Below are positions 6,285 through 52,862 of a stretch of DNA of 56,312 nucleotides, piece by piece (position 1 is the first letter of the stretch; the number at the start of each line of letters is the position of its first letter). This stretch comes from Macrostomum lignano (lineage: Eukaryota), in NCBI GenBank assembly GCA_002269645.1, contig NIVC01004183.1, positions 1-56,312 of the forward strand. The letters run 5' to 3'. A program made the translations under genes and the position numbers. The notes beneath the pieces were generated by a model, which made no database searches, was not told where the DNA came from, and saw only the letters and a list, made by a program, of their open reading frames with translations.

Positions 6285-9257
6285 TCAATTGTCTTTCTGG
6301 ACCTTATTTTTGGACTGATCGCGACTTTCATACCACAATGAGATTTGTACGCTGCAGTAGGATAGGGTTAATGTCAAAAAAAGATGCCACCAGGGTCCTG
6401 CAATGTGTTTATTAAGTTTATAGTTTCGATTAGGTAGGCTATTTTCATCTGTAAAGAAAGGCTTATTGCAATATACATGCACATGGATGTACGAAATGTA
6501 GCCTTACTATAAAAAAGAAGCGGTTTGAAGATTTCAACAACGAGCCACAAAGCGTCCAGAGTATTCATGAGAAAAACAAAGATGAAACAAGACGTGAGGA
6601 TCAGATTGCAGCCAATAATGTACGCAACCAAGCGCTGGTGGTTTTTTGGACTCAGGATCAGGCTCTGAAATATTTAAAGGTACGAGTGTTTCCCTAATCA
6701 TTACAGAATTAAGCATGCTCTCACAATGGACTTAAGTCCAGTCCTGAACTAGCCCAGAATCAAATCATTTCGAGTTCATTCTGTATCATCATTATGGGGT
6801 CAATCACTCGGAGCTCACTCTGGGTCAGTCACTCGGAGCTCACTCTGGGTCACTCACTCGGAGCTCACTCTGGGTCAGTCACTCGGAGCTCACTCTAGAT
6901 CAGTCACTCGGAGCTCACTCTGGGTCAGTCACTCAGAGTTCACTCTGGGTCAGTCACTCAGAGCTCACTCTGGGGTCAGTCACTCGGAGCTCACTCTAGA
7001 TCAGTCACTCGGAGCTCACTCTGGGTCAGTCACTCTGATCCCCAGACTCACCAGCCACGTCTTCAACTTCCTCTCATAGAAAGCGCAGGCCAGGGTCTCC
7101 AGAAGCAGCTGCAGGGCGTTCAGCGCAGCCCAGATGCGGACGCTGGTTGAGTCGCCGTGGTAGATGGAGACAAAGGCGAAGCTGGCAGCCACAGCAGCTA
7201 CCTGTCTCACAATGCCGTGCCGACTGCCTCCCATGGGGATGTAGATGTGGCTGTACATGAAGGAGGCCAGCCCCCTGTCGAACACGCGCCACATCTGCCT
7301 GTAAGTATAGACCCGGCTGATGCAGTCGGGCCAGTGCGGCAGCTCGACTCCGTCAATGCTGGACACGAGACCCGGCCAGCCGTACAGCTGCACGTAGACC
7401 AGCATGAAGTTCTGGCCATGCAGGTACATTGAGAACACGAGCCGCTTGTAGGGCACGGACTCGTAAGACCGAATGCTCTCCAGAAACGCTCCAACAGGTA
7501 GGAAATGATGCAGCACCTGAAGCAGCAGCATCCACACCAACAGGCGAGTCGCTCGCCACGCCAGCAGTAGCAGCAGGTTCGGCTTCCACACCAGCCTGTC
7601 GGGTCTCTCAGCCTCCCGACAGAAGTCAGCAAAGGTGAGGATCGGGCCGGAAAAGTGCCAGGGCAGGTAAAATCCGTAAGCCAGAGCTCGGGGAAGGTGC
7701 AGTCTAAGGAACTGGAGCAGGCTCAGCTGCTGTGCCTCATCTGCAGGTTGGCGTCTCTGGTCCCGCAGCATTTGGTTGAGGCTGAGTCCAGCGGAGATGC
7801 AGCGGCAGTACAGGTAGCCAGAGATTGGGTAGAACAGGTGAGAGTAATCACCTTCGAGATCCAGGACTTGAAAGAGCGCGCTGCTGTAATCCGAGTTTTG
7901 CAGCATCATTGCCGACAGAATGAACAGCCAGACACCAAACTGGGAGAAATATCCCATGCAAACAGCACCGCAGTGCAACACCAGAAAGTACATCGTTGCT
8001 TTGTAACCAAGAATAGCCGTTGTCACAGCCAAGGTGAAACTCGTAGTAGCCAGGTAGTGCACCTGATGAGGAATAGGGAACTTGGCAGGTTCTCAGCTGC
8101 TCTTGCAGGATATGGCATTTCGATTGAGCACTCTGTCACTGTCACTCCTCTCCTGACTGATCACTCTGTCTCTGTCACTGCTCTCCTGACTGATCACTCT
8201 GTCACTGTCACTCCTATCCTAACTGATCACTCTGTTACGGTCTCTCCTATCTTGTCATTAGAAATCGATTCCGCCATCATTAAATATTGACTTACCCATC
8301 TCGGAGCCAAACGAATCGTGACCTGACTGACCAACAAGAAGCCGACGCTAGCAAAGATTAAGAATTTGTAGCCGTCTTTCAGATCCGATTCCAACGAAAA
8401 GGAGCGCTCCTGCGGATTAAGATTGGGCCACCGGCGAGGCTGAACGAGCTAATAACATTTTATTGCCTGCGGTGTATCTATGCGAGACAAAGACTACATC
8501 TAAGCAACTCCTTTAAACACATTGAACTTGTAGTTTTTTCAGAGATAGTTACCATGCAGAGACTACAACACTAAAGATCAAGTTAAGAAATTAATCCATT
8601 CTCTCGGATCCTTCTTACCATCCACTTGGATAGCCAGCCATTCGTTAGCGTCATAGGGTGCAACTCTGCAAGCGAATGCGAAACAATTAAAGAATTATAC
8701 TGTTCTATAATGATAGCGTACGAGCTAGATAGAAAGGTTTTACGAGCGACATATGATTGATAGAGTTCTGATAAGGAATAACGAAGTACACTGTTACTAA
8801 TAGAAGTAATAGAAGTACACTACTATTGGCAAGCAGTCCGGCCCACTTCGCTGATCCCTGAGCACTCACACGGATACGTGCGCAGGCACACGCTCATACA
8901 GGGTGTACAGCAGCACAGACTTTCTCTTGGACGGAAGTCACACGACAAGATTCTCGAACGATATTTATACCTGGCCAACATGTACCTATACACCTGATTG
9001 CCACCAGAGTGAATTTATCATATCGAACCTTTCTTTGGCGACCTGCCAATGTTTAGATAGAAGTCGCCAGCCGCGTAGCCGAATGCGGCAGCGAACACGG
9101 AGGCGTACAGCAGGGTTTCCCGAGGCCCAGCGCTGGGGGGAACGGAAGTTGACACCGAGGCGGCGGCTGAGCGTTTGATCGGTTCGGCTTCCTTGCCTTG
9201 AAGGTCTCCGCTTGTCTGCACCGAGTTTGCAGTTGACGAAGTGGAAGCCATCGTCAT
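6285..9257 (-). CDS. hhat: Hedgehog acyltransferase-like MBOAT protein, copy A (~556 aa, 6 exons)
   Basis: Exons 9257-9029, 8665-8619, 8409-8296, 8062-7052, 6664-6508, 6397-6285; all GT-AG with consistent phases and no stops (1671 nt). HHAT motifs present: YGFYLPWHFSGPILTF, WRVFDRGL (Asp), YIPMGGS, FVSIYHG (catalytic His), WAALN, C-terminal PWW. Confidence 0.9.
6797..7036. repeat. Minisatellite, 25-bp unit CACTCGGAGCTCACTCTGGGTCAGT, in HHAT-A intron 4
   Basis: About 9 visible tandem copies beginning ~15 nt from the minus-strand donor at 7051. Confidence 0.9.
8825..8935 (-). mobile_element. Fragment of the SINE family seen at 5544 and 11865
   Basis: Reverse complement contains GCTGCTGTACACCCTGTATGAGCGTGTGCCTGCGCACGTATCC, matching the central domain of those copies. 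Confidence 0.6.
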
Positions 9258-9909
9258 GGATGTTCGATCTTATCTGGTAGGACAAGGCTGAACGTTCTTT
9301 TAAGCTAAGCTTTTCTTCTCTGACTTAAGTAAAACATGCTGTTTGTTTTGCAGCCTTGCAGGGGTTGAACAGAGCACTGTAGATTTTGAAAAGTACAAGT
9401 TCGACCATAGACATTCATGCGAGTGTACCGCATTGGTGAAGAAGGAATAAAATGGACGTGTAATATGGAGATGGAAAACAAAAGCTGCCACTTCAATAAG
9501 ATAAGATAAGATAATAATATTGATATAATTAGATAGTCGTTTAACGGAGAAGATTTTAATGAAAAATTAAAAATCAGTTTCATGAAGAAAATTTGATGTC
9601 TGCAAAGATTGTAGTCATTTTTGTGATATGTCAGAGATAAAGTTTGGGGGGGGGGGTTGCGTACGCACATTCAAGCTATCATGATTTATCCACATAAACT
9701 GACAATTAATCGTATCATTTCCATTCTTCTCTGTGTAATTTGCGTTTGGTGTGGCCCCCAATTGGGCCGTTTTACTTTGTGCTTGTTGTGTGCGTATTTA
9801 GAACGGTTCGTACAGTATAATAGGTTCACGATCGATAATTTAGGCCTCTAAATTATACTTCTCTAAACTAAAGGCCTCTAAACTAAACTAAACTTCGTGC
9901 GTGGCGCAA

Positions 9910-10355
9910 GAGAAGAGAAGAGTAAAAAGAGAAGAGAGGAGAGATGATAGAAAAGAGAGTAGACATGAGAGAGGGGAGATTAGAGATGACAGGTGGAAGA
10001 GAAGAGAGGAGTGAGGCGGGAATGAAGAGGGAGAGAGAAGAGAAGAAGAAAGAGAATAGAGTAGAGTAGAGGGAAGAAACGAGAGAGCAGGAGAGAGGTG
10101 AGGAGATGGGAGAGAGGAGGGATAAAAGAGTACAGATCGAGGAAATAGAGGAGAAAGAGGAGAGAGGAGAGAATATAGACGAAAGAGAAGAGAGAAGAAA
10201 TAGAAGAGAGAGAGGGAGAGAGACGAGAGATGAAAGATCAGAGAGATGAGAGAGGTAAGAGAGTAGAGAGAGGAGAAAGTAGTGAGGAGAAAGAATAGGA
10301 TAAAGATGAGAGCGCAGAGAGGAGAGATGAGAGATGAGAGACTAGAGATGAGAGA
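9910..10355. repeat. Polypurine (GA-rich) low-complexity tract
   Basis: Directly visible GA-rich sequence. Confidence 0.9.
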
Positions 10356-10767
10356 GCAGACAGGAGAGGCTGGGTCTGGAGTCTGGATAATGGCAGCAGT
10401 CAGTTTCTGCAAACAGGGAAAGCAAGATATGGTGTTTGAAAGGTTTTGTAGAGGATTTGGAGACGATTTGGAAGATGAGATTCAAGACATGGGATTTCCG
10501 CTGATGGATTACAGGGAATGGAATTCTGGCGATGGGATTGCTTCCCCTTTCTCCTCCGGAGGAGGAATTCCACTCGTTTAGTAATAGCGTCAGCGGCCTG
10601 CAGCTAAAGAGGGCTGCAAAGTCAAAGGACAATTCAATGCAGCACAGCGCTTCAAACGATTATATTAATTGCAGTTTGCTTCAAATTTGCTCAACACAGC
10701 AGTTCAAACTCTAAAAAATATGCAATACACAGACCGAAACACAACTATCCAGATGATGTCTGTTGCT

Positions 10768-10860
10768 TTGGGCAGAGCAGCTCCTCGGCGGTAAACGCGT
10801 CCGACTCTCAAACCACGATCCCGGGTTCGATTCCCGGCAGCCACATTCATTTAGGGCTTG
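10768..10860 (+). mobile_element. tRNA-like SINE head
   Basis: B-box GGGTTCGATTCCC and degenerate A-box; head-body junction GCAGCCACATT resembles GCAGTCACATT of the 5544 SINE. Confidence 0.6.
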
Positions 10861-10992
10861 TGCACGAATATTGGCCAGGTGGGCTTCGATCCCTTCTTGT
10901 TCTCTTTTCTTGAATATTGTCGCTGTTTTCCTTGGAGGTCTGTTGTCAAATTAACAAACCAAATCCATTCACCCCATCACAACCTGCACACG

Positions 10993-11192
10993 CAGTTGAG
11001 GATCTCTACCCTGATGAGAGACAGAGGCCCTCCGAGGCTGAGGTAGAGGGTGCGATTCGAGACCTACTGAAGCACGCTTCAGAGAGAGAAGCCGCCGAGG
11101 TGAAGCGCCGCCGAACAGTAGGACCTCCGGCTGGGCACCAACAGCCAGATGCGGCTCGGCATCAGCAGGCAACGGCGTCGAAGAATAATTAA
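10993..11192 (+). CDS. Candidate terminal exon resembling the C-terminal end of DUF4806/BEN-like domains
   Basis: Acceptor CGCAG| then ..EDLYPDERQRPSEAEVEGAIRDLLKHASERE..KRRR..stop; EVE..I..LLKHA.ER recalls DUF4806 ends. Recalled similarity only; upstream exons not found. Confidence 0.3.
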
Positions 11193-11864
11193 TTCCAGTA
11201 GCGACGATGATTAGAAGACTGACAGATTTTAAAAACCATGCTTTTGCTTCGTTTCTCGCTAGTTTTTACATGTATTTCTGCTTAGTAACGACTTGTTGGG
11301 CGACAGGTTTAAATTTTACTGTAGCTGTAGTGTATTTCGAGTAAGTTTAGTAACTATTTCAATAACTTTTAATCTGCGTTTTATTCTTATTTCCGATCAT
11401 TAAAAATTTTGCTATTTTCCTTTCCTGGTAATAAGTACGTTTGCTCGTAAACATTTATACTCAGTATACTGTATATACCGTAAAATATTTTCTGTTGGCC
11501 AGAAGTGGTTAACCTTTGCAGCAAATAATTGAAATAAAAATAAATAAGTAAATTTCAGCAACCAACCCTAAACACCGTACTAGGGTAGAAAATATTTCTA
11601 GACATCAATTTCCCGAGTCATTTTCTAATTGGACCTATAAATCCTGAATGCAAATGTGCGGTATTGTATAGAAACAAAAAAGTTTCATTTTCTACTAATA
11701 GTAGAATAGAAGACAAATTTCCCAGTACTAAAATAGTCCCGCGTCAGTAGCAAACGGACGTCATTTCGACTATAAAACTTTGTACATAATGCGTACCAGA
11801 GGACTCTGATTTCAGGACGTCATTCGGACCATTTTTTGACACCGGGGATCATGCGATTCACAGC

Positions 11865-12120
11865 CATGAGTGCTAAACCCCAAGGCGCAGAGAGTGTACA
11901 TGATTGACGATCAGGAAAGTCAGGGCTGCTGTACACCCTGTGTGAGCGTGTGTGTGAGTGCGTGCCTGCGTACAGTATTGGTGCGCTTGTCTGTGCTCAG
12001 GACTCAGCGAATGAGCAGGATTGCCGTCAGCACTGGCTGTGGGACCATGTTGCCGAGGGCATTGCGCCAGGTCGCCCCACAGCTCTTCTGCCATTGTTAT
12101 CATTATTTATTTATATTTAC
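11865..12120 (+). mobile_element. 5'-truncated SINE-like element sharing a central domain with the 5544 SINE
   Basis: CCCCAAGGCGCAG..GTGTACATG..AAAGTCAGGGCTGCTGTACACCCTGTGTGAG..TGCCTGCGTAC aligns to 5690-5780; the 3' end differs and ends in an AT-rich tail. Confidence 0.65.
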
Positions 12121-12543
12121 CCTTCACTCAGCTTATATATAAAAGAGAACGGATGACTCAAATTCACTAAAGTTTAATTGGGAGAGCTGTTTGTATGTCG
12201 ATCAGATTTTTATTCAATATATTGTTAGACTTCAGTGACTATATATATTCATTAATGTTTGCTTATGCTGCAGTCTATCCATGAGACGCATTAAGTTAAG
12301 TTCAGATTAGAACTCATACAGTAAGCTTCAGGATTATTTATTCAAATCAAAGCAGGAAAAGCACTTGGGGAAATTACAGTCACATTGCTAATCCGGATAA
12401 TCAACATATTGGTTCAGGTTGATGGGGAATAGTAGTTAACTAAGTAAATAAAATATTAATCAATATTTAGCAGTCATGTCTCATACGGATCTGTGAATGA
12501 ATTATTGATATATGAATTTGAATATGTTTCCAGGTGTTTCAGA

Positions 12544-15500
12544 TCAATTAATTTTCTGACAGACCTTGTTGACTTTCTTTCTCTTAGCCTCGACGCACTC
12601 TTCGTATCGGAGAGACAGTTGGACAGTGAAATAGGTCAATAATAGGCCCACAAACAGATGCCACCAAGGTCCTACAATGCAGTGGATCGTTGATGTAGTT
12701 GTAGATCTAATATGTTCTAGATCGCGGATCCCTTTACTCTCTAGATAGCGGCCCATGGACAGCTGAAGTAGAAGGCGGCTACACTCAAACATTTGGTCCC
12801 GATTTTTCTACGCCAATCCCTTCATTTGGAGCCAAATAGCTCCCGTTATCTCAAAAATCGACCACCAATTAGAATTTGGGGATCTCTATGGGGAGAAATG
12901 GGGATTTCATGTGATCGGAAGCCTTCCGAAACGTCTCGAAACGTCGAGTTATCCCTCCACTTCGTCGAGGTAGAAATCATCTGTCTATAATGTGTCTCCA
13001 TCAAGGCGAGGTAACACAATGAGAGCTTGGGTAGGAGGATAACAGACACATTGTTAAAAGATAACTATCGCTACAATTCTTCATACAAACAAAGAGCGTT
13101 TATCGTGGTCATCCCGTCATTTAAACATTTGAAGCTCCAAATTAAAGGATTGACATAGAGGAACCGTGACCCAATGCTTCAGGCTCCATTCTAGAGCTTT
13201 TGGTTCACATGAATCATAATTTATCCCATTTCTCCCCATAGAGATCCCCAAATGCTAAAGTGGTCGGTTTTAGGCACAACGGGAGCTACTTGGCTCCAAA
13301 TAAAGGGATTGGCGTAGACGTAGAGAAACCGGAGTAGGAATGTTTCGGGCTCCATTTTGACTCTAAGTTCACATTCCCTTTCTCATGAGAAAGCGTAGTG
13401 CTGAATTTGTGTCATGGACATGTGCTCGAGAAAATTCAGCTCATTTCTAAGAAAATCGAATTTTCAGCATCCTTCTACTTACAGTTGTCCATGTGGCGAC
13501 TATTCTCTTTTAATGCTTGTGTGACAATGAGCCGCTGCCACAGGACAACACTCGTCCATAGAAAACACAGCCAATCAAGTTGATTTTACAATGTTTCAAA
13601 TCAGGTATTACGGTTGGTTACTGCGCTTGGTGCTGACTTTTTTAATGGGATTATCCACTTGATTGGCTCGTATAAGCATTTCTAGCGCACCAATTTCACC
13701 GGGGTGGCAAAATTAGGTTTGTTGCGCAGCCTTGAGTTCGAGCTTCTACACCCGGAAAAGTTGGAATTGCAACTCACTGTAAAGCAGTAGAGGCTTGAAA
13801 ATTTCGACTATAAACAGCAGCGCAGATACGTCGCCAATTAGGAAGACAAAAATGAAGCAGGATGTCACGGCCAGATTGAAGCCGATAATGTAGGCCACCA
13901 GGCGCTGGTGGTTGGCGGGACTAACGCGGCGACTCTGAAATCGGTTAGTTTCATTTTATAATAATAATATTGCAACGATTCAAAGGTCGTAGCAACTGAA
14001 TGCTGACCAATTCGAGCTATAAATTGTGTTTTGTCTCAAGCCTCAGGTTTCACTAACTGAATTTGTTTCATCAAACGATTTGCCAGCCAGATGCACCTAA
14101 CGATAAGCTGTGTAAATCCCAAGTTCGGACGTTTAATTGAGCTGTCTTGGGGATGCTTGCTAGTTGAGGAATGCTTGCTATCTGGGGATGCTTGCTACCA
14201 GTATCTGCGGGATACTTGCTATCTGGGGTTGCTGACTCTTGGATGGGGGGTGCTTGCTATCTGGGGGATGCTTGCTGTCTCGGGGATGCCTGCTATTTGG
14301 GGGGCTTGCTATCTGGGAGGTGCTTGCTATCTGCGGGATGCTTGCTATCTGGGGGATGCTTGCTAGATCGGAACCCAACCATTCAATGGATGGAGCCATC
14401 CTAGCGGCGGGCATTATCACTGAAGACTTAATCGCTCGTGCGTTCAGAACCTTCAAGCCCTTCAAATCTCCTGGACCTGATGGTATCTACCCTGTTCTTC
14501 TTCGTGAAGCAGCCAAGATACCCTCGTTCTTGAGACTTACCCGCAATCTCATGCGGGATTCTATCCAGCTGGGATACGTTCCCAAGTGCTGGACCGAAGC
14601 TCGGGTAGTCTTCATTCCTAAACCTGGGAAGGGTGACTACCAGAGCGTCAAGGCCTTTAGGCCAATTAGCTTAACGTCAGCAATGCTTAAGCTGACTGAG
14701 AGGCTTATTCTCTGGCGGCTGCTTTCTTGCGAGCTGACAGCAATGCCTCTCAGCAATAATCAGCACTCCTTCCGTACCGGGAGGTCGACTGACAGCGCCC
14801 TGCATGCGATAGTCGAGAAGATTGAACGGGCAGTACTGGGTGACGGTTACGCCCTGGCTCTTTTTCTCGACATTGTTGGCGCCTTCGACAACGTTATCTT
14901 TGAAGCGTTTCAGAGGGCCCTTCAAAATCGCAAAGCTCACGCTACCCTCATGCGGTGGATCATGTACATGATCTCCAACCGTACGGTCACTGCCCAACTT
15001 CTTGGGCAAACTGCCTCCGCCACAGTCTGTAAGGGTGGACCCCAAGGCGGAGTCCTCACCCCGACGCTCTGGAACCTGGTCATGGACGCTCTTCTGGGTC
15101 CCGTGATCCCGTCTTCAAAGTCGGGTGTGCTGACGACGTCACTGCCATTGTGGCGGGACCGTCCCCCAGCACGCTCAGGGATCTGATGCAGAGCTTTATC
15201 TGCAAAGCAGAATCCTGGGCCAATGACAACGGTCTGGAACTCTCTGAGCCCAAAACAGTTGCCATTATGTTCACCAGCAGAATACGCTGGAACATACGTC
15301 CTCTGCAGCTTTACGGCAGAGATATTGCCTTCGCGCACCAGACTAGATGTCTCGGGGTCATACTTGACCACCGGCTCAATTGGTCCTTCCACGTGAAAGC
15401 AAAAGCCAAGCGTGTCTCAGCCATCCTGGCCCAGCTCCGACGAGCACTTGGCACTTCTTGGGGTCTTTCCCCAAAGCGGCTTTGGTGGATCTACACTTCC

Positions 15501-18500
15501 GTAGTTAGACCTGCCATTACGTACGCCTCGGTTGTCTGGGTTAGCGCTACCCAGGTCAAAATCCATGCAGATTTGCTCAACACGATCCAGGGCAGAGCGT
15601 GTAGGCTTATCTGCAAAGCCACCAGGTCCAGGCCCTTTGCCGGCATGGGGGCCTTTCTTAATCTACCGCCTCTCGACCTCTTCGTCAGGGGTGAGGCGGC
15701 TAGAACGACGCGGCGTTTACTTGATGCCGGCGTCAAATTCCTTTACATGAGGGCACCTGCTAAGCGGAACCTCGTCCCGCATAGTGACCTGTGCCTCAAC
15801 ATTCTCAACGAGTGTCAGGCCAATCGCGTCTTCACCGATGGCATTGCCTCAACGCTCAACCTGAGACAACGCTGCTCCGTAGCTATCGACTCGCGCGATA
15901 CCATCAATGACCACTGGAACCCTGGTGAGCTTCACTGCTACACCGACGGTTCTAAGCAGTCAGCCAACACCGGTTTTGGTGTTGGAATTTTCCTGAACGG
16001 GAGGGTTATCGCAACCCACGCTCAGTACACTGGGGTCAACTCCAGTGTCTTCCAAAATGAAGTTCTTGCCATCAGCTCCTGCATCGCAGAGCTCCTCGCC
16101 ACTGGCGTTACCGGTAAGAACATCCTTTTCCATTCGGACAGCCAAGCTGCCTTGCACGCCATCAGTGGCTGTAGTACCAATTCTGCTACAGTCCTCGACT
16201 GTATCAAACTCCTCAACATGTTGGGCTCCACCAACAAAATCACCCTTAAGTGGGTTCCGGGGCATGTGGGGATCCGAGGAAATGAGTTAGCTGACGCCCT
16301 TGCGGAAGTTGGCGCCTCCGGCTCCTCTCTCGGTCCCTGCCCTTGTCCCTGCCCTTGTCCCGATTCCCGGCTGTGTCTTCGACTCGCGCATCAAAACGTG
16401 GATCAGGACCCAGCACCGCTCGGTTTGGGCGAACTGCACCACCTGCAGGCAATCCAGAGGCGCTGTCCCTGAGCCCTCTCACCAGCTCCGGAAGCTCCTC
16501 TTGCGCCTCTCGCGCGGAGACATCCGGGCTGCCACCATGACCCTCTCAGGTCATGGGTGCTTCTCTATGTTGTGACTGACAATGCTTGCGCAATACTGAC
16601 CACTGACAATTAACTATTGACCTTATTGAATGCGTGGGCGTATACTGTACTCAGACTAGAATGTGTAGGTTATTGCGTATCGATTTGGCAATGCAACGTG
16701 CAAGTAGGAGTTTCATCTCTATAAATATATCGTGAGCGAGATGTGTATCTCTGAACTCAAAAGCTTCAATCAAAGAAACTCTCTGTGTTAATTAGGACAC
16801 AACAAATGGCGACGAGCGGACTCCCGTACCCAGCGGAGTTTCAACCAGTACCAGGCGAACCTCCTGTGCCATGGGCAAGGTGGATCAAGTCATTTGAGAA
16901 CTTCCTGGTAGCTGGAGCTCTCGAAGAGGCATCAGAGAGTCGGAAAAAGGCGATCCTCCTGCATCTGCTTGGTGAGGAAGGACGCCGCCGAGCTGCAAAC
17001 GTCGATGCAAGCAAGTCGCTTCAGGAGACCAAAAAGGCACTGAAGGCGATTTTCAGCTCATCGAGAAGCGTCATAGCAGAGCGCTTCGCCTTTCGGCAGC
17101 GAGCCCAGCACGACGGCGAGAGCATCGGAGACTACGTGATGGCCCTGAGAGAACTGGCAACAAACTGCAACTTTGGCACCTTTCACGACGAAATGATTCG
17201 TGGAGCTCGGATTCAAAATCTTCCAAGGTGACAACAGAGTGATGAGCATCAGCGAGACTACGATCGAGTGCGACTTCCCCGGAATCTTCGACGGTCTGGG
17301 CCGGTCCAAGAGCTTCATTCACCGGACAAAGATCGACGCCTCGGTCAAGCCAGTGTCTCAGCCAATGCGGAAGCTGCCGATCGGCCTGAAGGACGAAGTG
17401 ACGTCAGAGATCAGCCGGATGGAGCAACAGGGCATCATTGAGAAGGTCGACGCGTCCGAGTGGGTTAGCAACGTTGTCGTGACGCGCTAGAAGGAGTCCA
17501 ACAAAGTTCGTCTCTGCGTGGATCTGCGGCAGGTCAACAAGGCGGTGATCGCGGACCGCTATCCGGTACCGTCAATCGAGGACCTATTAGCCAGCATCAA
17601 CGGCTCGAAGTGCTTCAGCAAGCTGGACCTGCGTCAAGGCTACCAGCAGATTCCGCTGCATCCAGACTCTCGAGGACTGACGTGCTTCATCACCGATGCC
17701 GGCCTGTACCAGTTCACCGTGGTGCCATTCGGGCTATCCAGCTCCGGAGCTGCCTTCCAGCGAGCCCTGCAGACGGTGCTTCGAGGAGCTCCTGGCGCCA
17801 TCAACATCGTGGACGACATCCTGGTGCACGGCAAGGACGAGACTGAGCACGACAAGAACCTCCGAGAAGTCCTAGGGCGGATTCATCGCGAAGGCTTCAC
17901 ACTCAATCGAGAGAAGTGCAAATTCTGACAGGCGAGCGTGGATTTCTTCGGATTGGTCATCTCTGCAGACGGCCTCAAACCGACCAAGTCCAACGTCGAC
18001 GCAATTCTAAGAATTCCTGAGCCATCAACGGTCGCGCAAATTCAATCGTTTCTCGGGGCAGTGAACTTTTTGCACAAGTTCATACCGCATTACTCAGCAA
18101 TTGCCGAGCCTCTGAGACAACTGCTCAAAAAGGACGCGGACTGGCACTGGGGTGAGCGAGAACGTACAGCCTTCCGTACACTCAAGTCAGCCGTAACCAG
18201 CAGCCCAGTGTTAGCTCATTTTGACTGCCAAGCTGAGACGTACGTCACCTGCGATGCAAGTCTAGACGGACTGGGGGCAGTGCTCAGCCAAGTACAAAAC
18301 GGAAAAGAGGTGCCAATCGCGTTCGCATCGAGAGCACTCAGCCCAGCGGAAAAGCGATACTCAGCAGGAGAGCGAGAAGCCCTAGCCTGTGTATGGAGCA
18401 TCGAACGCTGGCACTACTATCTATACGGCAGACGAGTAACGCTGCGCACCGACCACAAGGCCCTGACAACTCTGCTCGACTCGAAAGGCATGGGGCACAG

Positions 18501-21500
18501 GCCTCTTCGCATTCATCGATGGGTCGAGAGACTTCGCGGCTACGACGTCCGGTTTGAGCACATCCCTGGCGCTGACAACAAGTGCGCGGACATGCTGTCC
18601 AGATGGGCCACGACGGAGCGCGTTCCAGCCGAGGAGACCGATGAGGAGGGCTACGTCTACGCAGTCGTCGACTCGAAGACAACGCTGACGGCAGACGCAC
18701 TGGCAACAGCGACCAAGGAGGACGAAGTGCTGCAGGCGGTTTTGCGGTACATCTCGGGCGGCTGGCCAACGAAGGTGGACAGCTCTCTAAAGCCGTACTT
18801 CAACGTCCGCGAAGAGCTGTTCTGCTGGAACAACGGTCAGTGCCTCGGCCGTGGTGAACGCGCGATCATCCCGACGAGCCTGCGACTTCAAGTCATCGAG
18901 GAGGCCCACGAAGGGCATCCGGGCGTCGTTCGGTCAAAGCAGCGGTGCCGCGACACGGTCTGGTTTCCTGGAATTGACCGGCAGGTGGAGGACTATGTCA
19001 AGAACTGCACGGCCTGCACTCTGGCGGAGAAGTCCGGCAAGCCTCAACAGACGATCGTGACACCAATCGAGTGGCCAGATGGACCGTGGGACAAGGTTGA
19101 GATCGACATCTTCGGCGAGGTCGCCGCGGCTCCTCGACACCAGCGGTTTCTACTGGTGATCCACGACCTGTACAACAAGTGGCCGGAGATTGCAGCCATG
19201 GAAACCGTCACCTCTGCCAACATCATCAAGACGCTTCGGAAGCTATTCGGCCGGTGGGGAGTCCCGAAGATGCTGATCAGCGACAACGGACCCCAGTTCG
19301 TCAGCGACGAGTTCGAAGAGTTCCTGCGAGCCGAGGGCATCAAGCACAGCCGAGTGAGCCGGTACTACCCGCAAGGCAACGGCGGAGTCGAGCGATTCAA
19401 CCGGAGTCTGAAGGAGGGCCTGGCAGCGAACCTGAGGGCGGGAGCGAAGTTCGAGGACGCCATCGACCTGGTGCTCAAGACCTACAGGACCAGCCAGCAC
19501 GCTCTCACCGGGCTGACTCCAGCCGAGCTGATGATCGGGCGCAAGCTGCGGTCCGGACTGCAGCTGCTCAGGCCAACTCCAGTGCAACAGCGGGACGACA
19601 GCGATCTGCGCGACGCTATCACTGAGAGGCAAGCCAAGAACGCCGACTACACCAACAAGCGAAGGCGGGCTCGTGACTCTATGCTCCAGGCCGGAGACTG
19701 GGTCTGGCGACAGACGCCGCACCGAGCGCACAAGCTGGCGACCCGACTGAAGGAACCGCTAAAGATCGCCTCCCGAGCAGGGCGCAACACCTTCGTGCTG
19801 TCCGACGGTACAAAGTGGCAAGCGAGTCGGCTGGTTAAGTGCAACAGCCCACCGGCTGACAACGGCGCGGCCGACCAAGAGGACGACTGGTTCGATTTGC
19901 CGCTGCCGCCGGCTCCGCCCCCACGGACGGGCGAGCCGCCACCTCCACCTGAACTTCGAAGGTCAACTCGAGCTCGACGGCAACCGGCGCGTTATCCTCT
20001 TCCGGAAGGGGGGAGAATGTTGTGACTGACAATGCTTGCGCAATACTGACCACTGACAATTAACTATTGACCTTATTGAATGCGTGGGCGTATACTGTAC
20101 TCAGACTAGAATGTGTAGGTGATTGCGCATCGATTTGGCAATGCAACGTGCAAGTAGGAGTTTCATCTCTATAAATATATCGTGAGCGAGATGTGTATCT
20201 CTGAACTCAAAAGCTTCAATCAAAGAAACTCTCTGTGTTAATTAGGACACAACACTCTAGGCACCAGTACCTGCAGGGCAATGCCACCAACGCCATCTGC
20301 AGTTTCTGTAACTCAGGTGACGAAACCGCTGAGCATTTTGTCAGCATCTGTCCCGCCTTTACGCGAGCCAGACTCACTTACCTCGGGCCACACACATCTA
20401 TTACTGAAGCGTGCAAACCCGAAAACTTTAACCAGCTCATGCGCTACCTCCGGGCCACCCGCATGGCTGAACTCTCCTTTCCAGAGAGCACCATAGCTGC
20501 TGGCGACACTGGGGGACCTCCCTGGGCGGCGCCAACACTTCGTCCATAGCGACGCGTCGGCCGTTCAGGGATTAGCGGAATGGGCGTTCGCGCCTTCCCG
20601 CTGTGTCCCCCCGGGACAGCCCTGCAGCTAAGTCAAGTAAGTCAAGGGGGATGCTTGCTATCTGCGGGATGCTTGCTATCTGGGGGATGCTTGCTATCTG
20701 CGGGATGCTTGCTATCTGGGGGATGCTTGCTATCTGCGGGATGCTTGCTATCTGGGGGATGCTTGCTATCTGCGGGATGCTTGCTATCTGGGGGATGCTT
20801 GCTATCTGGGGGATGCTTGCTATCTGCGGGATGCTTGCTATCTGGGGGTGCTTACTATCTGGGGGATGCTTGCTATCTGGGGGATGCTTGCTATCTGGGG
20901 GATGCTTGCTATCTGGGGGTGCTTACTATCTGGGGGATGCTTGCTATCTGGGGGTGCTTGCTATCTGGGGGTGCTTACTATCTGGGGGATGCTTGCTATC
21001 TGGGGGTGCTTGCTATCTGGGGGATGCTTGCTATCTGGGGTTGCTGACTCTTGGAGGGGATGCTTGCTATCTGGGGGATGCTTGCTATCTGGGGTTGCTG
21101 ACTCTTGGAGGGGATGCTTGCTATCTGGGGGATGCTTGCTATCTGGGGTTGCTGACTCTTGGATGGGGGCTGCTTGCTATCTGAGGGATGCTTGCTGTCT
21201 CGGGGATGCCTGCTATTTGGGGATGCTTGCTATCTGGGGGATGCTTGCTATCTGGGGGATGCTTGCTATCTGCGGGATGCTTGCTATCTCGGGGATGCTT
21301 GCTATCTAGGGGATGCTTGCTATCTGCGGGATGCTTGCTATCTGGGGGATGCTTGCTGTCTTGGGGATGTTTTCTATTTAGGTGGAATGCCTGCTATCTT
21401 TGTGAAAGCTTTATTTTGTTGTGTTTTGGTTAATTCTATAAAAAAAGAAATTCATAGCAAGCGTATTTGTCCGTGACAGTTTTACTTGAATGAATAAGGT

Positions 21501-24379
21501 GATTATAAAATTGAAGAAGGAATTGGTTTTTTAAGAAAATTTGCTATTTTAATTGTTTTCCTTGAATTATTTTTTCCTTGCTTATTGGGCGCCCCAAAGC
21601 CCTAGATTGCTAGTTTAATATATTTTCATACGGAATTTCGGTCGTCTGGTTTATGAGGAAATAAATCTCGGGCCACCAGAATAAGTTGAAAATTTCCATT
21701 TCCCACTGAGGGGTTTGGAAGGGCCCGTTTTCGGGCTCTTCCCACCGAGCTGTCTGTGAACCTGCTGTCTCATTGAGTGCAAGTACAAGAACTGCCCATC
21801 AGACAGGGTTCACCTAGTGGCCTTTCCGGCGAGACAGCCTGTTAGTTAGTCTTCAATGGTTAGTTATTAATAGCTAAGAGTAATTTATACTCTTGCATAC
21901 AAGTATAAAGACGAGGGAGCTAGCTATGCCTTAGTTAAGCCTGAGTATTTAGATTGAGTAAACATGCAAAACTTTGATTTGCAGTTTACAAAACAAATCC
22001 CTCTTTTGCTAAGCGCAGTGTCTGTGTAAAAGCTTAAGGATGTCGCTCACGCACAAGCCCCACCGAGAATGGTCAGGTTAGCAACCCGCTACTTTCGTCA
22101 TTCAAGAGCCAAACCTGTTGACGAATTTTGCTTTATTTAATAAGAAAAGCGGGGCTATCCTGATATACATAACATGGAAACAATTGCCACCTCACCAGCC
22201 AAGCCTTCAGCTTCCATTCGTACAGCCTGCAGGCCGCAATCTCCAGCAGTAAATGAACCGCGTTCAGCGCAGCCCAGATGCGGACGCTGGTTGAGTCGCC
22301 GTGGTAGATGGAGACAAAGGCGAAGCTGGCAGCCACAGCAGCTACCTGTCTCACAATGCCGTGCCGACTGCCTCCCATGGGGATGTAGATGTGGCTGTAC
22401 ATGAAGGAGGCCAGCCCCCTGTCGAACACGCGCCACATCTGCCTGTAAGTATAGACCCGGCTGATGCAGTCGGGCCAGTGCGGCAGCTCGACTCCGTCAA
22501 TGCTGGACACGAGACCCGGCCAGCCGTACAGCTGCACGTAGACCAGCATGAAGCTCTGGCCATGCAGGTACATTGAAAACACGAGCCGCTTGTAGGGCAC
22601 GGACTCGTAAGACCGAATGCTCTCCAGAAATGCTCCAACAGGTAGGAAATGATGCAGCACCTGAAGCAGCAGCATCCACACCAACAGGCGAGTCGCTCGC
22701 CACGCCAGCAGCAGCAGCAGGTTCGGCTTCCACACCAGCCTGTCGGGTCTCTCAGCCTCCCGACAGAAGTCAGCAAAGGTGAGGATCGGGCCGGAAAAGT
22801 GCCAGGGCAGGTAAAATCCGTAAGCCAAAGCTCGGGGAAGGTGCAGTCTAAGGAACTGGAGCAGGCTCAGCTGCTGTGCCTCATCTGCAGGTTGGCGTCT
22901 CTGGTCCCGCAGCATTTGGTTGAGGCTGAGTCCAGCGGAGATGCAGCGGCAGTACAGGTAGCCAGAGATTGGGTAGAACAGAGATTCCATGTAGCCTTTT
23001 TGACTGAGAGTGCCAGTGTCAAGAATGTCAATCCAGTGATTTGAATTCTGCAGCATCAGAGCTGCCAGTCCCAGCGCCCAAACGGCGGCCCAAGAAAAAT
23101 AAGCCAGGACGATCTCACCGCAGAACAGCAGCAGCAGGTACAGCGATTTTCTGGCGCCAATCACCAGGACTGTCGCAGCGAATGTACACCCAGCGGTTGA
23201 TAGGTAGTGAACCTGAATTCATATTTTGAGACCGTCAATATGAGAGATGAGCAGATTAGGTTATAGAGGACTACGAGAACAACAGGAGCGTTTACGATAT
23301 TTTTGCATTGTGTGGTGGACATCCAAAAACAGGGTGTAGAGCACTTGACTACGGAGTGTTGGACACTTGAGAACAGGTTTGAGGACACTTGAGAATAGGT
23401 TTGAGGACACTTGAGAACAAGTTAGAGGACACTTGAGAACAGGTTTGAGGACACTTGAGAACAGGTTTGAGGACACTTGAGAATAGGTTTGAGGACACTT
23501 GAGAACAGGTTAGAGAACACTTGAGAACAGGATAAAGGGCACTTGTGAACAGTGCAACAGCTGTACAGTCTCATTAAAAATGCTAATTAGCTCACCCATC
23601 TCGGCGCTAATCGAAGAGTCAACTGACTGACCAGCAGAAATCCGAGACAAGCGAGCAAGTAATATTTATAACCGGCCATCATTTCCGACTCCAACGGTAT
23701 CGACAGAGATTCCTGTCAATTCCAAAGTGTATATAATTGTAAGTGTCTTGGTTTATGAATATATTACAATTACTATGAAGATTTTGATTTAACAGTTGCA
23801 TTCAAACTTTTGGCATAGCAATATATTTTGCCTCACCTGCCAATCGGCAAGCCATCCAGCGGTGAGCTGCTCCGCTGGCAGAACTGCAATGAAAAGAGAA
23901 TCGCATATGTATAAATAGTTAATGCGTCACACCTCGAACTCAAACATTCATGGCTCAAATGTGAAATATGAGATTGGTCATTTTTGGTGTTTAAAATGGC
24001 GTTCATTGGAATCGAAATGTCACTCATTAGATTCGATATGGCACCTTTATATCCTATTAATCCCATACACATTTTTTATTTATAATGCTTCATCAAGCGA
24101 AAGGAAGTCAACCAATTAATTACCTAGATTTGGCTGCGACCCAATGGCCTCATAGAAGTCGTAGGCTCCGTAGATAAACGCCGCCGCAAAGAGGACGGCG
24201 TACGCCAGCGTCTCCAAACGACTGGCGCACCGCGGAACCGCCACCGACTGGCATCCTTCGTCAACTTCCTCGAAATGTTTAACCGAAGCCTTAACTGGCC
24301 ACAGAGCTGGGGAGAGCCGATTGGTGGACTTTAATCTCAACTTCTTTTGAACTTCAACTTTACTGTTGTTGCTGAACAT
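12544..24379 (-). CDS. hhat: Hedgehog acyltransferase-like MBOAT protein, copy B (~573 aa, 6 exons)
   Basis: Exons 24379-24124, 23883-23837, 23712-23596, 23212-22196, 13934-13778, 12671-12544; same exon phases and near-identical sizes to copy A (47, ~115, ~1014, 157 nt); open frame of 1722 nt; catalytic Asp and His motifs intact. Confidence 0.9.
12786..13346. mobile_element. Non-autonomous TIR/foldback element in HHAT-B intron 5
   Basis: About 120-bp imperfect inverted repeats: CTACGCCAATCCCT..TTTGGAGCCAA.TAGCTCCCGTT..TTTGGGGATCTCTATGGGGAGAAATGGG (12808-12903) versus its reverse complement at 13224-13318. No TSD found. Confidence 0.7.
14146..14365. repeat. Minisatellite, 17-bp unit GGGGATGCTTGCTATCT (left part, split by LINE insertion)
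   Basis: Same unit resumes at 20646. Confidence 0.9.
14366..20645 (+). mobile_element. 5'-truncated non-LTR retrotransposon with RT, RNase H and CCHC finger (LOA/I-group-like), interrupted by a Gypsy element
   Basis: RT motifs SPGPDG, FRPISL, FLDIVGAFD, PQGGVL; YADD is changed to CADD (15126-15137) after a frameshift near 15100. RNase H: YTDGS, EVLAI, SDSQAA, KWVPGH..GNELAD. SGH..RHQ..C..C..ET.EH....C reassembles across the Gypsy insertion. 15-bp TSD GGGGGATGCTTGCTA at 14351-14365 and 20646-20660 (ambiguous within the repeat). Confidence 0.92.
16568..20254 (+). mobile_element. Ty3/Gypsy LTR retrotransposon (Mag-like), defective
   Basis: 237-bp LTRs at 16568-16804 and 20018-20254 with 2 mismatches; TGTTGTG..CACAACA termini; 5-bp TSD CTCTA; PBS TGGCGACGAG (tRNA-Ser-like) overlapping the gag ATG; PPT GAAGGGGGGAGAA. 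Domain order gag-RT-RNaseH-integrase (HHCC, D-D-E). Stops at 17488 and 17926, and a gag/protease deletion near 17199. Confidence 0.97.
20646..21400. repeat. Minisatellite, 17-bp unit GGGGATGCTTGCTATCT (right part)
   Basis: About 40 copies; contains variant blocks (GTTGCTGACTCTTGGA) also present left of the LINE. Confidence 0.92.
23355..23545. repeat. Minisatellite, 22-bp unit TTGAGGACACTTGAGAACAGGT, in HHAT-B intron 3
   Basis: About 8 visible copies. Confidence 0.9.
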
Positions 24380-47000: not shown

Positions 47001-50000
47001 GCAGATTTGCCGAGATTGTGCCTGCAGATTTGCCTAGATTGTGTCTGCAGATTTGCCGAGATTGTGTCTGCAGATTTGCCGAGATTGTGTCTGCAGATTT
47101 GTCAAGATTGTGTCTCCAGCTATGTCAAGATTGTGTCTCCAGCTATGTCAAGATTGTGTCTGCAGATTTGCCTAGATTGTGTCCGCAGATTGTGTTAAAG
47201 AAACCTTAATCTCAGTGAAATTTCTGAAAATTCTCAGTTGTGCTGCCGAGCGCATTCAGGTGGTTCAGCTACCTCCAATGTCCAGTTGATAAAGCAGGCC
47301 ATTGTCATGCCTACATGAACATTTGGCCTTTACTGCCTGACTGACAAGTGGGATCTGGGAAAGCAGTGTGGGGATGGACCGGGCAGGTTATCCTCTGCAC
47401 CGTCGTTTCGCCCGGCTTGAAAAAGGCGGACTTCCCGGGGTGATTAATGGGCTTCTTTGTAGCAGGGGGCCAGGCAGTCGGGACCCCCATTCGTGCCCTA
47501 GCAAGAGCCCCACCCCAAGGGCCTGACAGGACCACCCACCCACCCCACAGTCTAAAGGATCAGACGACATACAGAAAAGCAAGACTAGACGTTTAGTCGT
47601 GCGTGCCTGTTTGTGTGTGTGTGTGTTCTTTCTTTAATACTTTTAGGCATCCACTTTCTGCTGGGGAGACGGGGGATGGAGGAGACTCCTCGTCTGCTGG
47701 CGGGACTTGGTGGCGGCGGCCGTGGCGGCGTCTGCTGCTCCAACTGCTGCCTTCTCTTGCTGTGCTGCTGTTGCTGCTTCTGTGCCAGCCCACCAGCGAG
47801 GGATTAAGGTGGACAGGCCAAGACAAGCCAAGACAAGACAAGACAGGACAGGACGCGATCTCGGAGGCCTCGTATTGGCGGGCGGACAATGATTTTTCTA
47901 TTCGAAATTCCCTCAGACCGGTAGCTGGGCGCCATTTCCTTTCGGGCTTAATACATATTGTTGGCGAACAAGACGGCAAATGATGCAAGATGCTCCTGAT
48001 TTGGGGAAACGTACGACTCGCTCCCTTAACCTGATAAACAGGCAACGACGAGGATTCAGCGAGTCAGTCAACGGCGTCGGAGCCTGCTGTGTCCAACGGT
48101 GTCGGCAGTGGAACCGGCGCTTCAAGTGGCGCCGCCGCAGGCGGAGGGAAGCGCGGAAAAACCGTCTGTGGCGGCGGCGGCGGCGGCGGCAAGGACAGCA
48201 GCAAAGCGACCCGAGTCCGGACGGTGCTGAACGAGAAGCAGCTGCACACGCTGCGCACCTGCTACGCGGCCAATCCTCGGCCGGACGCGCTGATGAAGGA
48301 GCAGCTGGTGGAGATGACCGGCCTGAGCCCGCGAGTCATCAGGGTCTGGTTTCAGAACAAGCGGTGCAAGGACAAGAAGAAACAGCTGCTCATGAAACAG
48401 ATGGAGCACCAGCAGCAGAAGGTGAGGATGTCTATCAGAAGGTAATCTTTTTTGTTCATTATTTATAAGACAGATTAGCAAATCCATTCTATTCCTGCAT
48501 CCGTGATGTTGGCTAGATTAGCAATCCATTCTATTCCTGCATCCGTGATGTTGGCTAGATTAGCAATCCATTCCATTCCTGCATCCGTGATGTTGGCTAG
48601 ATTAGCAATCCATTCTATTCCTGCATCCGTGATGTTAGCTAGATTAGCAATCCATTCTATTCCTGCATCCGTGATGTTGGCTAGATTAGCAATCCATTCC
48701 ATTCCTGCATCCGTGATGTTGGCTAGATTAGCAATCCATTCTATTCCTGCATCCGTGATGTTGGCTAGATTAGCAATCCATTCTATTCCTGCATCCGTGA
48801 TGTTGGCTAGATTAGCAATCCATTCTATTCCTGCATCCGTGATGTTGGCTAGATTAGCAATCCATTCTATTCCTGCATCCGTGATGTTGGCTAGATTAGC
48901 AATCCATTCTATTCCTGCATCCGTGATGTTGGCTAGATTAGCAATCCATTCTATTCATTCATTCCTTTCTAATGGCGGGAAACTCTCCTCTGAGAACAAC
49001 TTAATAGAAATGAGACGTCAATAGCAAAACCAAATAGCAGTTAAAAATTGATTTACGTACTGGCAGACAGACAGAGTGACAAGCAGTGTGCAGGTCGGCT
49101 TAGGTGCAGTGAAATTGTCCACCCCGAGGTTGCCGAACCAGAAGCAGCAGAAATCCACAGTGCAGCTCCACGCCCCCCTGAGGATGAGATCTCAGCTGCG
49201 TAAACACCTGGCCGACTGAAATAGCTGAATAATGGGATTCTATGCCGTGTTCCCAGCCAGCTTGTTTGAGTCCACCCACTAGCCCGAGGGGGGGGGGTCG
49301 CAGCAGATCCCAGAAACCGCAGCAGCCGGGCTGATTTGAGGGGGGGGGCGACGGCGGAAGGAGGCGTTTGGCAAGGCCTGACCAAACAAGACCCCTGGCA
49401 GTGCCGGAAGAGACCAAGAGACGCGGTCGCTAATCTTTTCTAGTTACGCTCGCCCAAGCCCTCACTATTATTGCCCCCCCCCGAATTTTGACTCCACCAC
49501 CAACAATTGCGCAGCGACCGGCTAGTGCACCTGCTTTCAGTGTGCGGGAGTGCAGCCTGAGTCTCTCACCGGGAGTTGAGCAGATCCTGAGTCTCTTACC
49601 GGGGAGCTGAGCAGGTCCTGAGTCCCTCACATGCAGTTGAGCAGGTCCTGAGTCCCTCACCCGCAGTTGAGCAGATCCTGAGTCTCTTACCGGGGAGCTG
49701 AGCAGGTCCTGAGTCCCTCACATGCAGTTGAGCAGGTCCTGAGTCCCTCACCCGCAGTTGAGCAGGTCCTGAGTCCCTCACCTGCAGTTGAGCAGATCCT
49801 GAGTTCCTCATCTGAAGTTGAGCAGGTCCTGAGTCCCTCACATGCAGTTGAGCAGGTCCTGAGTCCCTCACCTGCAGTTGAGCAGATCCTGAGTTCCTCA
49901 TCTGAAGTTGAGCAGATCCTGAGTCCCTCACCTGAATTTGAGCAGATCCTGAGTTCCTCACCCGCAGTTGAGTAGGTCCTGAGTCCCTCACATGCAGTTG

Positions 50001-52250: not shown

Positions 52251-52256
52251 CTACTC

Positions 52257-52862
52257 CTGCTCAACTCCGGATGAGGGACTCAGGACCTTCTCAACTCCAG
52301 ATGAGGGACTTAGGACCTTCTCAACTCCGGATGAGGGACTCAGGACCTTCTCAACTCCGGATGAGGGACTCAGGACCTTCTCAACTCCGGATGAGGGACT
52401 CAGGACCTTCTCAACTCCGGATGAGGGACTCAGGACCTTCTCAACTCCGGATGAGGGACTTAGGACCTTCTCAACTCCGGATGAGGGACTTAGGACCTTC
52501 TCAACTCCAGATGAGGGACTTAGGACCTTCTCAACTCCAGATGCGGGACTCAGGATCTGCTCAACTGCAGATGAGCGACTCAGGACCTTCTCAACTGCAG
52601 ATGAGCGACTCAGGACCTCAACTGCAGGTGAGAGACTCAGGATCTGCTCAACTGCAGATGAGCGACTCAGGACCTTCTCAACTCCAGATGCGGGACTCAG
52701 GACCTGCTCAACTGCAGGTGAGAGACTCAGGATCTGCTCAACTGCAGATGAGCGACTCAGGACCTGCTCAACTGCAGGTGAGAGACTCAGGATCTGCTCA
52801 ACTGCAGATGAGCGACTCAGGACCTGCTCAACTGCAGGTGAGAGACTCAGGATCTGCTCAAC
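52257..52862 (-). repeat. Minisatellite family X, inverted copy (GATGAGGGACTCAGGACCTTCTCAACTCCG)
   Basis: Reverse complement of the 49557 unit; about 20 copies. Confidence 0.93.

Follow-up and report, generated by a model that had tools for sequence, protein, structure and literature searches.

Interlocus gene conversion as the probable source of a shared catalytic core in two tandem HHAT-type paralogues of Macrostomum lignano

How can two neighboring genes differ in roughly half of the residues they encode and still be almost identical, even at synonymous sites, across the segment that specifies their active site? The question arises from a 56,312-nucleotide stretch of DNA (positions 1 to 56,312 of contig NIVC01004183.1, Macrostomum lignano assembly GCA_002269645.1, Mlig_3_7), the whole of which we refer to as the window. 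It contains two genes of the MBOAT family, gene A (Mlig013745) and gene B (Mlig018939, model Mlig018939g4), which an earlier note based on the sequence had described as HHAT paralogues sharing a 722-bp gene-conversion tract. Following up that description, we found that genuine interlocus gene conversion between old tandem HHAT-type paralogues is the probable explanation, with a probability of roughly 0.9. We favor it because nothing else explains a collapse of synonymous divergence that is bounded by sharp edges inside an exon.

A sharply bounded segment of near identity

We derived GT-AG exon models to match the deposited proteins of gene A (P0004) and gene B (P0002), and the spliced translations did so with zero mismatches. 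The two genes lie head to tail on the minus strand and follow a common six-exon plan (Table 1). When they were compared directly at an offset of 15144, the tract differed at only 5 of 722 positions (99.3% identity; window positions 7410, 7433, 7487, 7568, and 7684). Four of these mismatches are synonymous, and the remaining one, at 7410, is an Asn/Ser difference that is private to the B copy of the window contig. The length, offset, and types of difference that had been reported were thus reproduced exactly. The two tracts are colinear and in frame, with no indel between them in the window contig, and both spliced open reading frames (ORFs) are intact. Each tract falls wholly within exon 4 of its gene, with 225 nt (A) or 231 nt (B) of that exon lying 5' of it and 64 nt lying 3' of it, which places both edges inside exon 4 as the earlier note had proposed.

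Outside these limits, similarity is lost. At the same offset, identity in 100-bp intervals was 93 to 100% within the tract and 13 to 36%, the random level, elsewhere. A blastn match did stretch somewhat further (7047-7837 against 22191-22981), but the added 69 bp (7047-7115) are only 68% identical. By the Nei-Gojobori method, synonymous divergence (dS) was 0.029 in the tract, compared to 2.3 in exons 1 to 3, 1.5 in the 5' part of exon 4, 2.0 in its 3' part, and saturation in exons 5 and 6. This amounts to a fall of about 50- to 100-fold, which, together with the sharp edges inside an exon, upholds the original proposal of ectopic conversion. Nonsynonymous divergence (dN) behaved similarly, with 0.002 in the tract versus 0.26 to 0.57 elsewhere. 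Amino acid identity between A and B beyond the tract was 48% in exons 1 to 3, 37% and 62% in the 5' and 3' parts of exon 4, and 64% in exons 5 and 6, in keeping with the claim that about half of the residues differ there. The longest run of identical nucleotides outside the tract is 12 nt.

Chance cannot produce such a pattern. The probability of at least 717 identical positions out of 722 is 1e-131 at the nucleotide identity of the best-conserved flank (64%) and 2e-61 even at an assumed identity of 80%; a chance origin is therefore excluded. In addition, GC content at third codon positions (GC3) is elevated in the tract (0.77 versus 0.625 in the rest of the coding sequence; Fisher p = 3e-4), which suggests GC-biased conversion acting through many events over time.

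The edges themselves are abrupt. At the 5' edge (in gene orientation), which lies in a variable loop, similarity drops from 100% to the random level within one codon, and a 6-bp indel distinguishes A from B 31 to 37 nt further upstream. At the 3' edge, identity falls to 68% at 64 nt before the end of exon 4. We looked for microhomology, repeats, and indels exactly at the tract edges and found none there. Minisatellites do occur close to exon 4: in gene A, a 25-bp array (6797-7035) begins 17 bp past the 3' end of that exon, and gene B has a 22-bp array in intron 3 (23361-23552). These arrays could act as local hot spots for breakage or recombination. We also observed that older gene models of A, from the ML2 assembly (P0003 and P0012), omit 153 residues of exon 4 (from ...SSALF to QNFML...), beginning 40 nt upstream of the 5' edge of the tract. 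The omission could represent an exitron-like isoform or an artifact of gene prediction.

Table 1. Positions of the two genes, the homogenized tract, its private flanks, and the retroelement insertion (window coordinates)
Feature	Position	Strand	Remarks
Gene A (Mlig013745), MBOAT, 556 aa	6285..9257	-	Six exons; spliced translation equals P0004 exactly
Gene A exons	9257-9029, 8665-8619, 8409-8296, 8062-7052, 6664-6508, 6397-6285	-	
Gene B (Mlig018939), MBOAT, 573 aa	12544..24379	-	Six exons; spliced translation equals P0002 exactly
Gene B exons	24379-24124, 23883-23837, 23712-23596, 23212-22196, 13934-13778, 12671-12544	-	
Homogenized tract, gene A	7116..7837	-	Codons 206-446; central helices with heme Cys, gatekeeper Trp, catalytic Asp and His (by alignment)
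Homogenized tract, gene B	22260..22981	-	Codons 218-458; 717/722 identical to the tract in A
Private 5' part of exon 4, gene A	7838..8062	-	Random-level identity to B 22982-23212 beside the edge
Private 3' part of exon 4, gene A	7052..7115	-	68% identical to B 22196-22259; dS about 2
Retroelement insertion, gene B intron 4	14365..20646	+	6.3 kb; specific to the window haplotype; absent from contigs C97 and C70

The shared segment and the HHAT active site

Several lines of evidence bear on what the shared segment encodes. The exon-4 products scored 84.8 bits (A) and 84.7 bits (B) against the Pfam MBOAT family (PF03062; gathering score cutoff, 27), with an E value of 9e-24 for gene A. Human HHAT (7Q1U, 7MHY, and 7URF) was the sole sequence match in the PDB (E = 7e-30). 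In the phmmer alignment to 7Q1U, D404 of B (motif FD) fell on Asp339 and H444 (motif YHG) on His379. The same alignment placed PDCIS on PRCVS, making C389 the counterpart of heme Cys324, and MWRVFD on MWRYFD, making W400 the counterpart of gatekeeper Trp335. The roles of Cys324 and Trp335 come from work on human HHAT (PMC8693861), and an Asp/His dyad sets HHAT apart from the GUP1/GHL1 branch, which carries a His/His pair (bioRxiv 10.64898/2026.08.27.744591), just as it differs from the His/His or Asn/His found in other MBOATs. The catalytic Asp, the catalytic His, and the heme Cys all lie inside the tract, which bears out the claim that it spans the MBOAT active site. Across a 55-sequence family alignment, D404 was invariant, while H444, C389, and W400 were each at least 90% conserved.

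An AlphaFold2 model of B built on that alignment had a pLDDT (predicted local distance difference test) of 87.7 and a pTM (predicted TM score) of 0.88. In Foldseek searches the model matched HHAT over its full length (TMt, 0.89 to 0.92; root mean square deviation, 2.7 Å), whereas DltB, PORCN, MBOAT7, and LPCAT3 all scored 0.65 or less. By sequence and predicted fold, then, A and B are HHAT-type MBOAT paralogues, as had been proposed, with Hedgehog palmitoylation as a putative activity and a putative one-to-one orthology to HHAT.

When extrapolated from the 7Q1U alignment, the tract corresponds approximately to residues 154 to 393 of human HHAT; in the model of B it covers the helices of residues 214 to 458. 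The private modules of B comprise residues 1 to 217 and 459 to 573, that is, an N-terminal module of about 217 amino acids and a C-terminal module of about 115. In human HHAT, the terminal helices form the pocket for the palmitoyl tail and limit that tail to C16 (PMC8693861).

The tract region is also about twice as conserved family-wide as the remainder (30% versus 15 to 18% identity to distant homologues). It appears to be the most conserved part of the family, where homology would persist longest. Its conservation beyond the pair is ordinary, however: the protein identity is 53% with the next paralogue of M. lignano and about 30% with other animals. The nearest relatives of the proteins are further M. 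lignano paralogues (34 to 41%), and next come lophotrochozoan proteins with the automatic name "HHAT-like" (about 30%). An exhaustive HMMER search returned nothing nearer than 41% besides the A and B proteins themselves. A word-indexed search of 5.8 billion proteins with the exon-4 product recovered only M. lignano clusters, with no sequence from a sister species or a population sample; the lone non-flatworm cluster member, P0011 (43 aa), proved to be unrelated. Further HHAT-like paralogues lie at other loci (P0013, P0014, and P0016). The model of P0013 seems to join two tandem copies into one, and near the catalytic Asp it has long stretches of peptide sequence that recur unchanged in P0014. 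Judged from these proteins, P0013 and P0014 are a possible second case of partial homogenization.

Homeologous contigs and the probable history of exchange

The DV1 line of M. lignano has three subgenomes (S, L1, and L2) with 1.9 to 2.4% single-nucleotide polymorphism (SNP) divergence (PMC10733133). We compared the window contig (W) with the homeologous contigs NIVC01002729.1 (C97), NIVC01003352.1 (C70), and NIVC01002730.1 (C48). C48 represents the same haplotype as the window and stops at the retroelement insertion. C97 and C70 carry the tract with exactly the first and last alignment columns seen in the window, while each contig has its own flank variants and the offset between A and B is 8,688 bp in C97 and 8,610 bp in C70.

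In the seven tract sequences that were compared, 16 sites carry substitutions, and there is a single deletion, of 1 bp, within a C4 run of the B copy of C70. None of the 16 sites separates A from B. Eleven are singletons, and each of the other five, which are shared, runs counter to the A/B split. Specifically, C97 alone carries the variants at alignment columns 995 and 1412, and it has them in A as well as in B; columns 876 and 1127 (window positions 7684 and 7433) unite W_A with C97_B, and column 992 unites W_A with C70_A. Several pairs of shared sites violate the four-gamete test. Pairwise distances among the tracts range from 0 to 12 without A/B structure, compared to flanks that differ by about 56% between paralogues. 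Thus, across three homeologous contigs of one line, themselves mosaic and polished with short reads, the flanks split cleanly into A and B and the tract has no A/B-fixed site.

We favor repeated, patchy exchange because of this lack of fixed sites, the variants shared across paralogues, the absence of A/B structure, and the elevated GC3. On balance, recurrent conversion is the likelier history, and we hold it with moderate confidence. The earlier note had called recurrence possible. Paralogue-shared variants within a single contig support that suggestion, but the argument from individual SNPs is weakened by polishing and by chimerism in the assembly.

A number of observations weigh against this interpretation or limit it. 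A single set of PacBio reads underlies all contigs; Canu was used for assembly, and the polishing with Pilon drew on short genomic and RNA-seq reads (PMC5730564). Reads that fall within at least six near-identical copies are not uniquely placeable, so individual SNPs of the tract may have been assigned to the wrong copy. This doubt applies above all to columns 876 and 1127, with their swapped pattern. Columns 992 and 995 are part of a (CTG)n run. Between columns 995 and 1412, C97_A and C97_B still differ at four sites, and no single simple event accounts for the variants specific to C97. Moreover, 36% of the assembly length has been reported as chimeric (PMC10733133), and block mosaicism among the three contigs extends beyond the tract; incongruence among subgenomes is therefore not specific to the tract. 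We had considered the contrast between flank and tract genealogies among subgenomes as proof of recurrence, but its value is weakened by this block mosaicism. Finally, the start of the first event between copies that had already diverged is unexplained, unless the core was never allowed to diverge.

It is possible, although rather unlikely, that a single conversion took place shortly before the three subgenomes diverged and that none has occurred since, with the shared variants arising from polishing or assembly errors or from slippage in the CTG run. Consistent with this, the distance between A and B within a contig (5 to 6 sites, 0.7 to 0.8%) is similar to tract divergence between subgenomes (about 1%; genome-wide, 1.9 to 2.4%). 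Polishing with multimapping reads and chimeric scaffolds are documented for this assembly, and two of the shared columns (992 and 995) are those within the triplet repeat. A single event is harder to reconcile with the absence of any fixed A/B difference among the 16 sites and with the elevated GC3, which suggests many events over time. Column 1412 is a further difficulty. It lies outside any repeat and is private to C97, yet it is present in both C97 paralogues; its placement should be reliable in long reads that span 8.7 kb, and polishing with short reads is unlikely to have introduced it into precisely those two copies.

Assembly collapse was the first explanation that we considered. In its general form, the true cores of A and B would differ, and their identity would stem from read-correction collapse or from polishing. 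The genome is indeed neopolyploid and repeat rich, its assembly is redundant, near-identical copies can be blended by Canu correction and by Pilon, and the 1-bp deletion in the C4 run of C70_B demonstrates that consensus errors persist. We nevertheless regard an artifact as very improbable. Collapse is not credible because it would have had to create the identical sharp-edged patch on three occasions, each time amid flanks with about 56% mismatches, in separately assembled contigs with their own flank haplotypes and different spacing of A and B. In addition, these A-type and B-type mosaics recur in proteins predicted from the older ML2 assembly, 722 bp is only a small fraction of the length of a PacBio read, and identity drops from 100% to random within one codon. 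The assemblies do, however, all go back to a common PacBio data set. Blending would also work only on copies of about 96% identity or higher to begin with, and a segment that similar would amount to a conversion tract in its own right.

More improbable still, a third, unsampled paralogue might have converted both A and B. M. lignano does have further HHAT-like paralogues (P0013, P0014, and P0016), and a private cluster of substitutions in C70_A could derive from another donor. However, the next closest M. lignano proteins are only 34 to 41% identical, and neither the 5.8-billion-protein search nor the exhaustive HMMER search revealed another protein bearing the tract. Lastly, we give almost no credence to extreme purifying selection on nucleotides without exchange, for example through an overlapping functional element: although the tract is the most conserved part of the family, its synonymous sites are homogenized (dS of 0.03 versus more than 1.5), its constraint at the protein level is ordinary, the opposite strand contains short ORFs only, and the edges are too sharp for a selective gradient.

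Other differences among the contigs were also apparent. In a comparison over window coordinates 25500-5500, C70 matches C97 at 25500-23925, is equal to the window sequence at 23924-22694, and matches C97 once more between about 13756 and 7844. All three contigs are almost identical over a block of 3 kb (11777-8579; intergenic sequence and exons 1 and 2 of A), while neighboring blocks differ by 3 to 14%. This mosaicism reflects either homeologous exchange in a neopolyploid or chimeric assembly. Within the tract, the deletion in C70_B is the loss of one C from a CCCC run (about position 2870 of NIVC01003352.1, equivalent to window position 22837); it causes a frameshift and therefore the truncated 254-aa annotation PAA51815.1. 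We rejected pseudogenization of this copy, as a 1-bp loss in a C4 run is typical of long-read consensus error, which is the most likely explanation. C70_A has four private substitutions within 90 bp (about 11480-11580; window positions 7654, 7582, 7577, and 7566), all of them transversions and all nonsynonymous (F>I, P>T, N>K, and L>Q). This cluster could reflect polishing errors, decay of a redundant copy, or a patch from another donor. In gene A, the private 5' part of exon 4 (7844-8184 in window coordinates, read from 8184 to 7844) differs by 5 to 8% between subgenomes, compared to only about 1% in the adjacent tract, and the differences include a cluster of four amino acid changes (VTTAILGYKAT versus VTAAILGYRTA).

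In gene B, a retroelement insertion in intron 4 accounts for the larger spacing in the window. It enlarges that intron to 8.2 kb and lengthens the offset between A and B from about 8.6 to 8.7 kb to 15.1 kb, and it had no part in the conversion itself. The insertion is young, because it is absent from two homeologous contigs. It sits inside an 18-bp minisatellite (20646-21399, with a remnant at 14141-14365). ORFs resembling the reverse transcriptase and RNase H of a long interspersed nuclear element are found at 14239-16472. They are followed at 16567-20254 by a Ty3/gypsy-type long terminal repeat (LTR) retrotransposon with PNMA-like gag, RVT_1, RT_RNaseH, and integrase domains. Its 238-bp LTRs (16567-16804 and 20017-20254) are 99.2% identical. 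Elsewhere, about 30 minisatellite arrays with periods of 14 to 44 bp and lengths of up to 2 kb fill much of the window between 25000 and 56312, including inverted 30-bp arrays at 49556-50547 and 52256-52862 with an extra fragment at 53690-53811.

A proposed mechanism and comparison with known systems

We infer the mechanism of repair, like the recurrence of conversion and any functional difference between A and B, and describe it here as a proposal. A and B would exchange sequence by nonreciprocal homologous repair, an exchange limited to the 722 bp of exon 4 that form the tract. When one copy broke within its core, the other, 8.6 to 15 kb away on the same chromosome or on the sister chromatid, would serve as the repair template. 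Because the flanks offer identical runs of at most 12 nt, heteroduplex could not spread into them; the edges would therefore be fixed and self-reinforcing. Each new event would keep the core identical and hence still convertible. The most likely history is one of repeated, patchy conversion that was still going on around or after the divergence of the three subgenomes, rather than one event. The outcome would be two intact enzymes that have one catalytic module in common and private helical modules at their N and C termini.

Could identity of the core also be advantageous? Under such modular concerted evolution, selection would maintain a single catalytic and heme module that the two enzymes share and co-evolve, a scenario that we consider doubtful. 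If it were true, A and B may differ in acyl-chain or protein-substrate specificity, because the terminal helices of HHAT build the acyl-chain pocket and the approach for the substrate. The tract and its edges would then also persist across Macrostomum species over a long time.

Gene conversion of this kind has practical consequences. Any RNA interference trigger, in situ probe, CRISPR guide, quantitative PCR amplicon, or short-read mapping placed in codons 206 to 446 of A or 218 to 458 of B will hit both genes in all subgenomes. To be specific for one paralogue, a reagent has to be directed at the private exons (1 to 3, 5, and 6) or at the initial 225 nt of exon 4. Trees and dS-based dates for the A/B duplication will mislead if exon 4 is included. 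At the same time, the pair is a ready-made chimera experiment for MBOAT specificity, and it illustrates unusually cleanly how one module of a duplicated enzyme can be held constant by conversion while divergence goes on in the other parts.

Literature searches combining Macrostomum with HHAT and Macrostomum with gene conversion returned no earlier description of this locus. Interlocus gene conversion between tandem paralogues is well known from the globin, RHD/RHCE, and CYP21 genes. The process is thus classical, as partial conversion between tandem duplicates is textbook knowledge (PMC3966223), and the A/B locus is a new example of it. In Caenorhabditis elegans, conversion between tandem paralogues has been described for fog-2/ftr-1, hsp16, and col-12/col-13; tracts there range from 12 to 2958 bp, and long ones may build up from many short events where these are unopposed (PMC3966223), a setting that the A/B tract, if converted repeatedly, would resemble. 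Mosaic divergence has also been modeled for tandem copies of HMA4 (bioRxiv 10.1101/2025.10.29.685298). Like these cases, A and B are neighbors in the same orientation a few kilobases apart, and they are nearly identical, including at synonymous sites, amid diverged sequence. Their 722-bp tract falls within the C. elegans range, is confined to an exon, and has elevated GC3. Unlike these cases, the two genes are very old, with saturated dS in the flanks and 37 to 64% amino acid identity, yet the patch is long and 99.3% identical. It also corresponds to the whole catalytic core and has identical edges in three subgenomes of a neopolyploid.

The proteins themselves resemble human HHAT (7Q1U, 7MHY, and 7URF; PMC8693861) in fold (TM score, 0.92), in the Asp/His dyad, the heme Cys, and the Trp, and in having about 12 long helices with HHAT-specific terminal helices. 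They differ from it in being only about 24 to 30% identical, in occurring as two tandem copies with further paralogues, and in a predicted disordered N-terminal extension of about 45 amino acids. With GUP1 and plant GHL1 they share a clade (GUP1/HHAT) and the same fold, but in place of the His/His pair of those proteins they have the Asp/His pair of the HHAT type.

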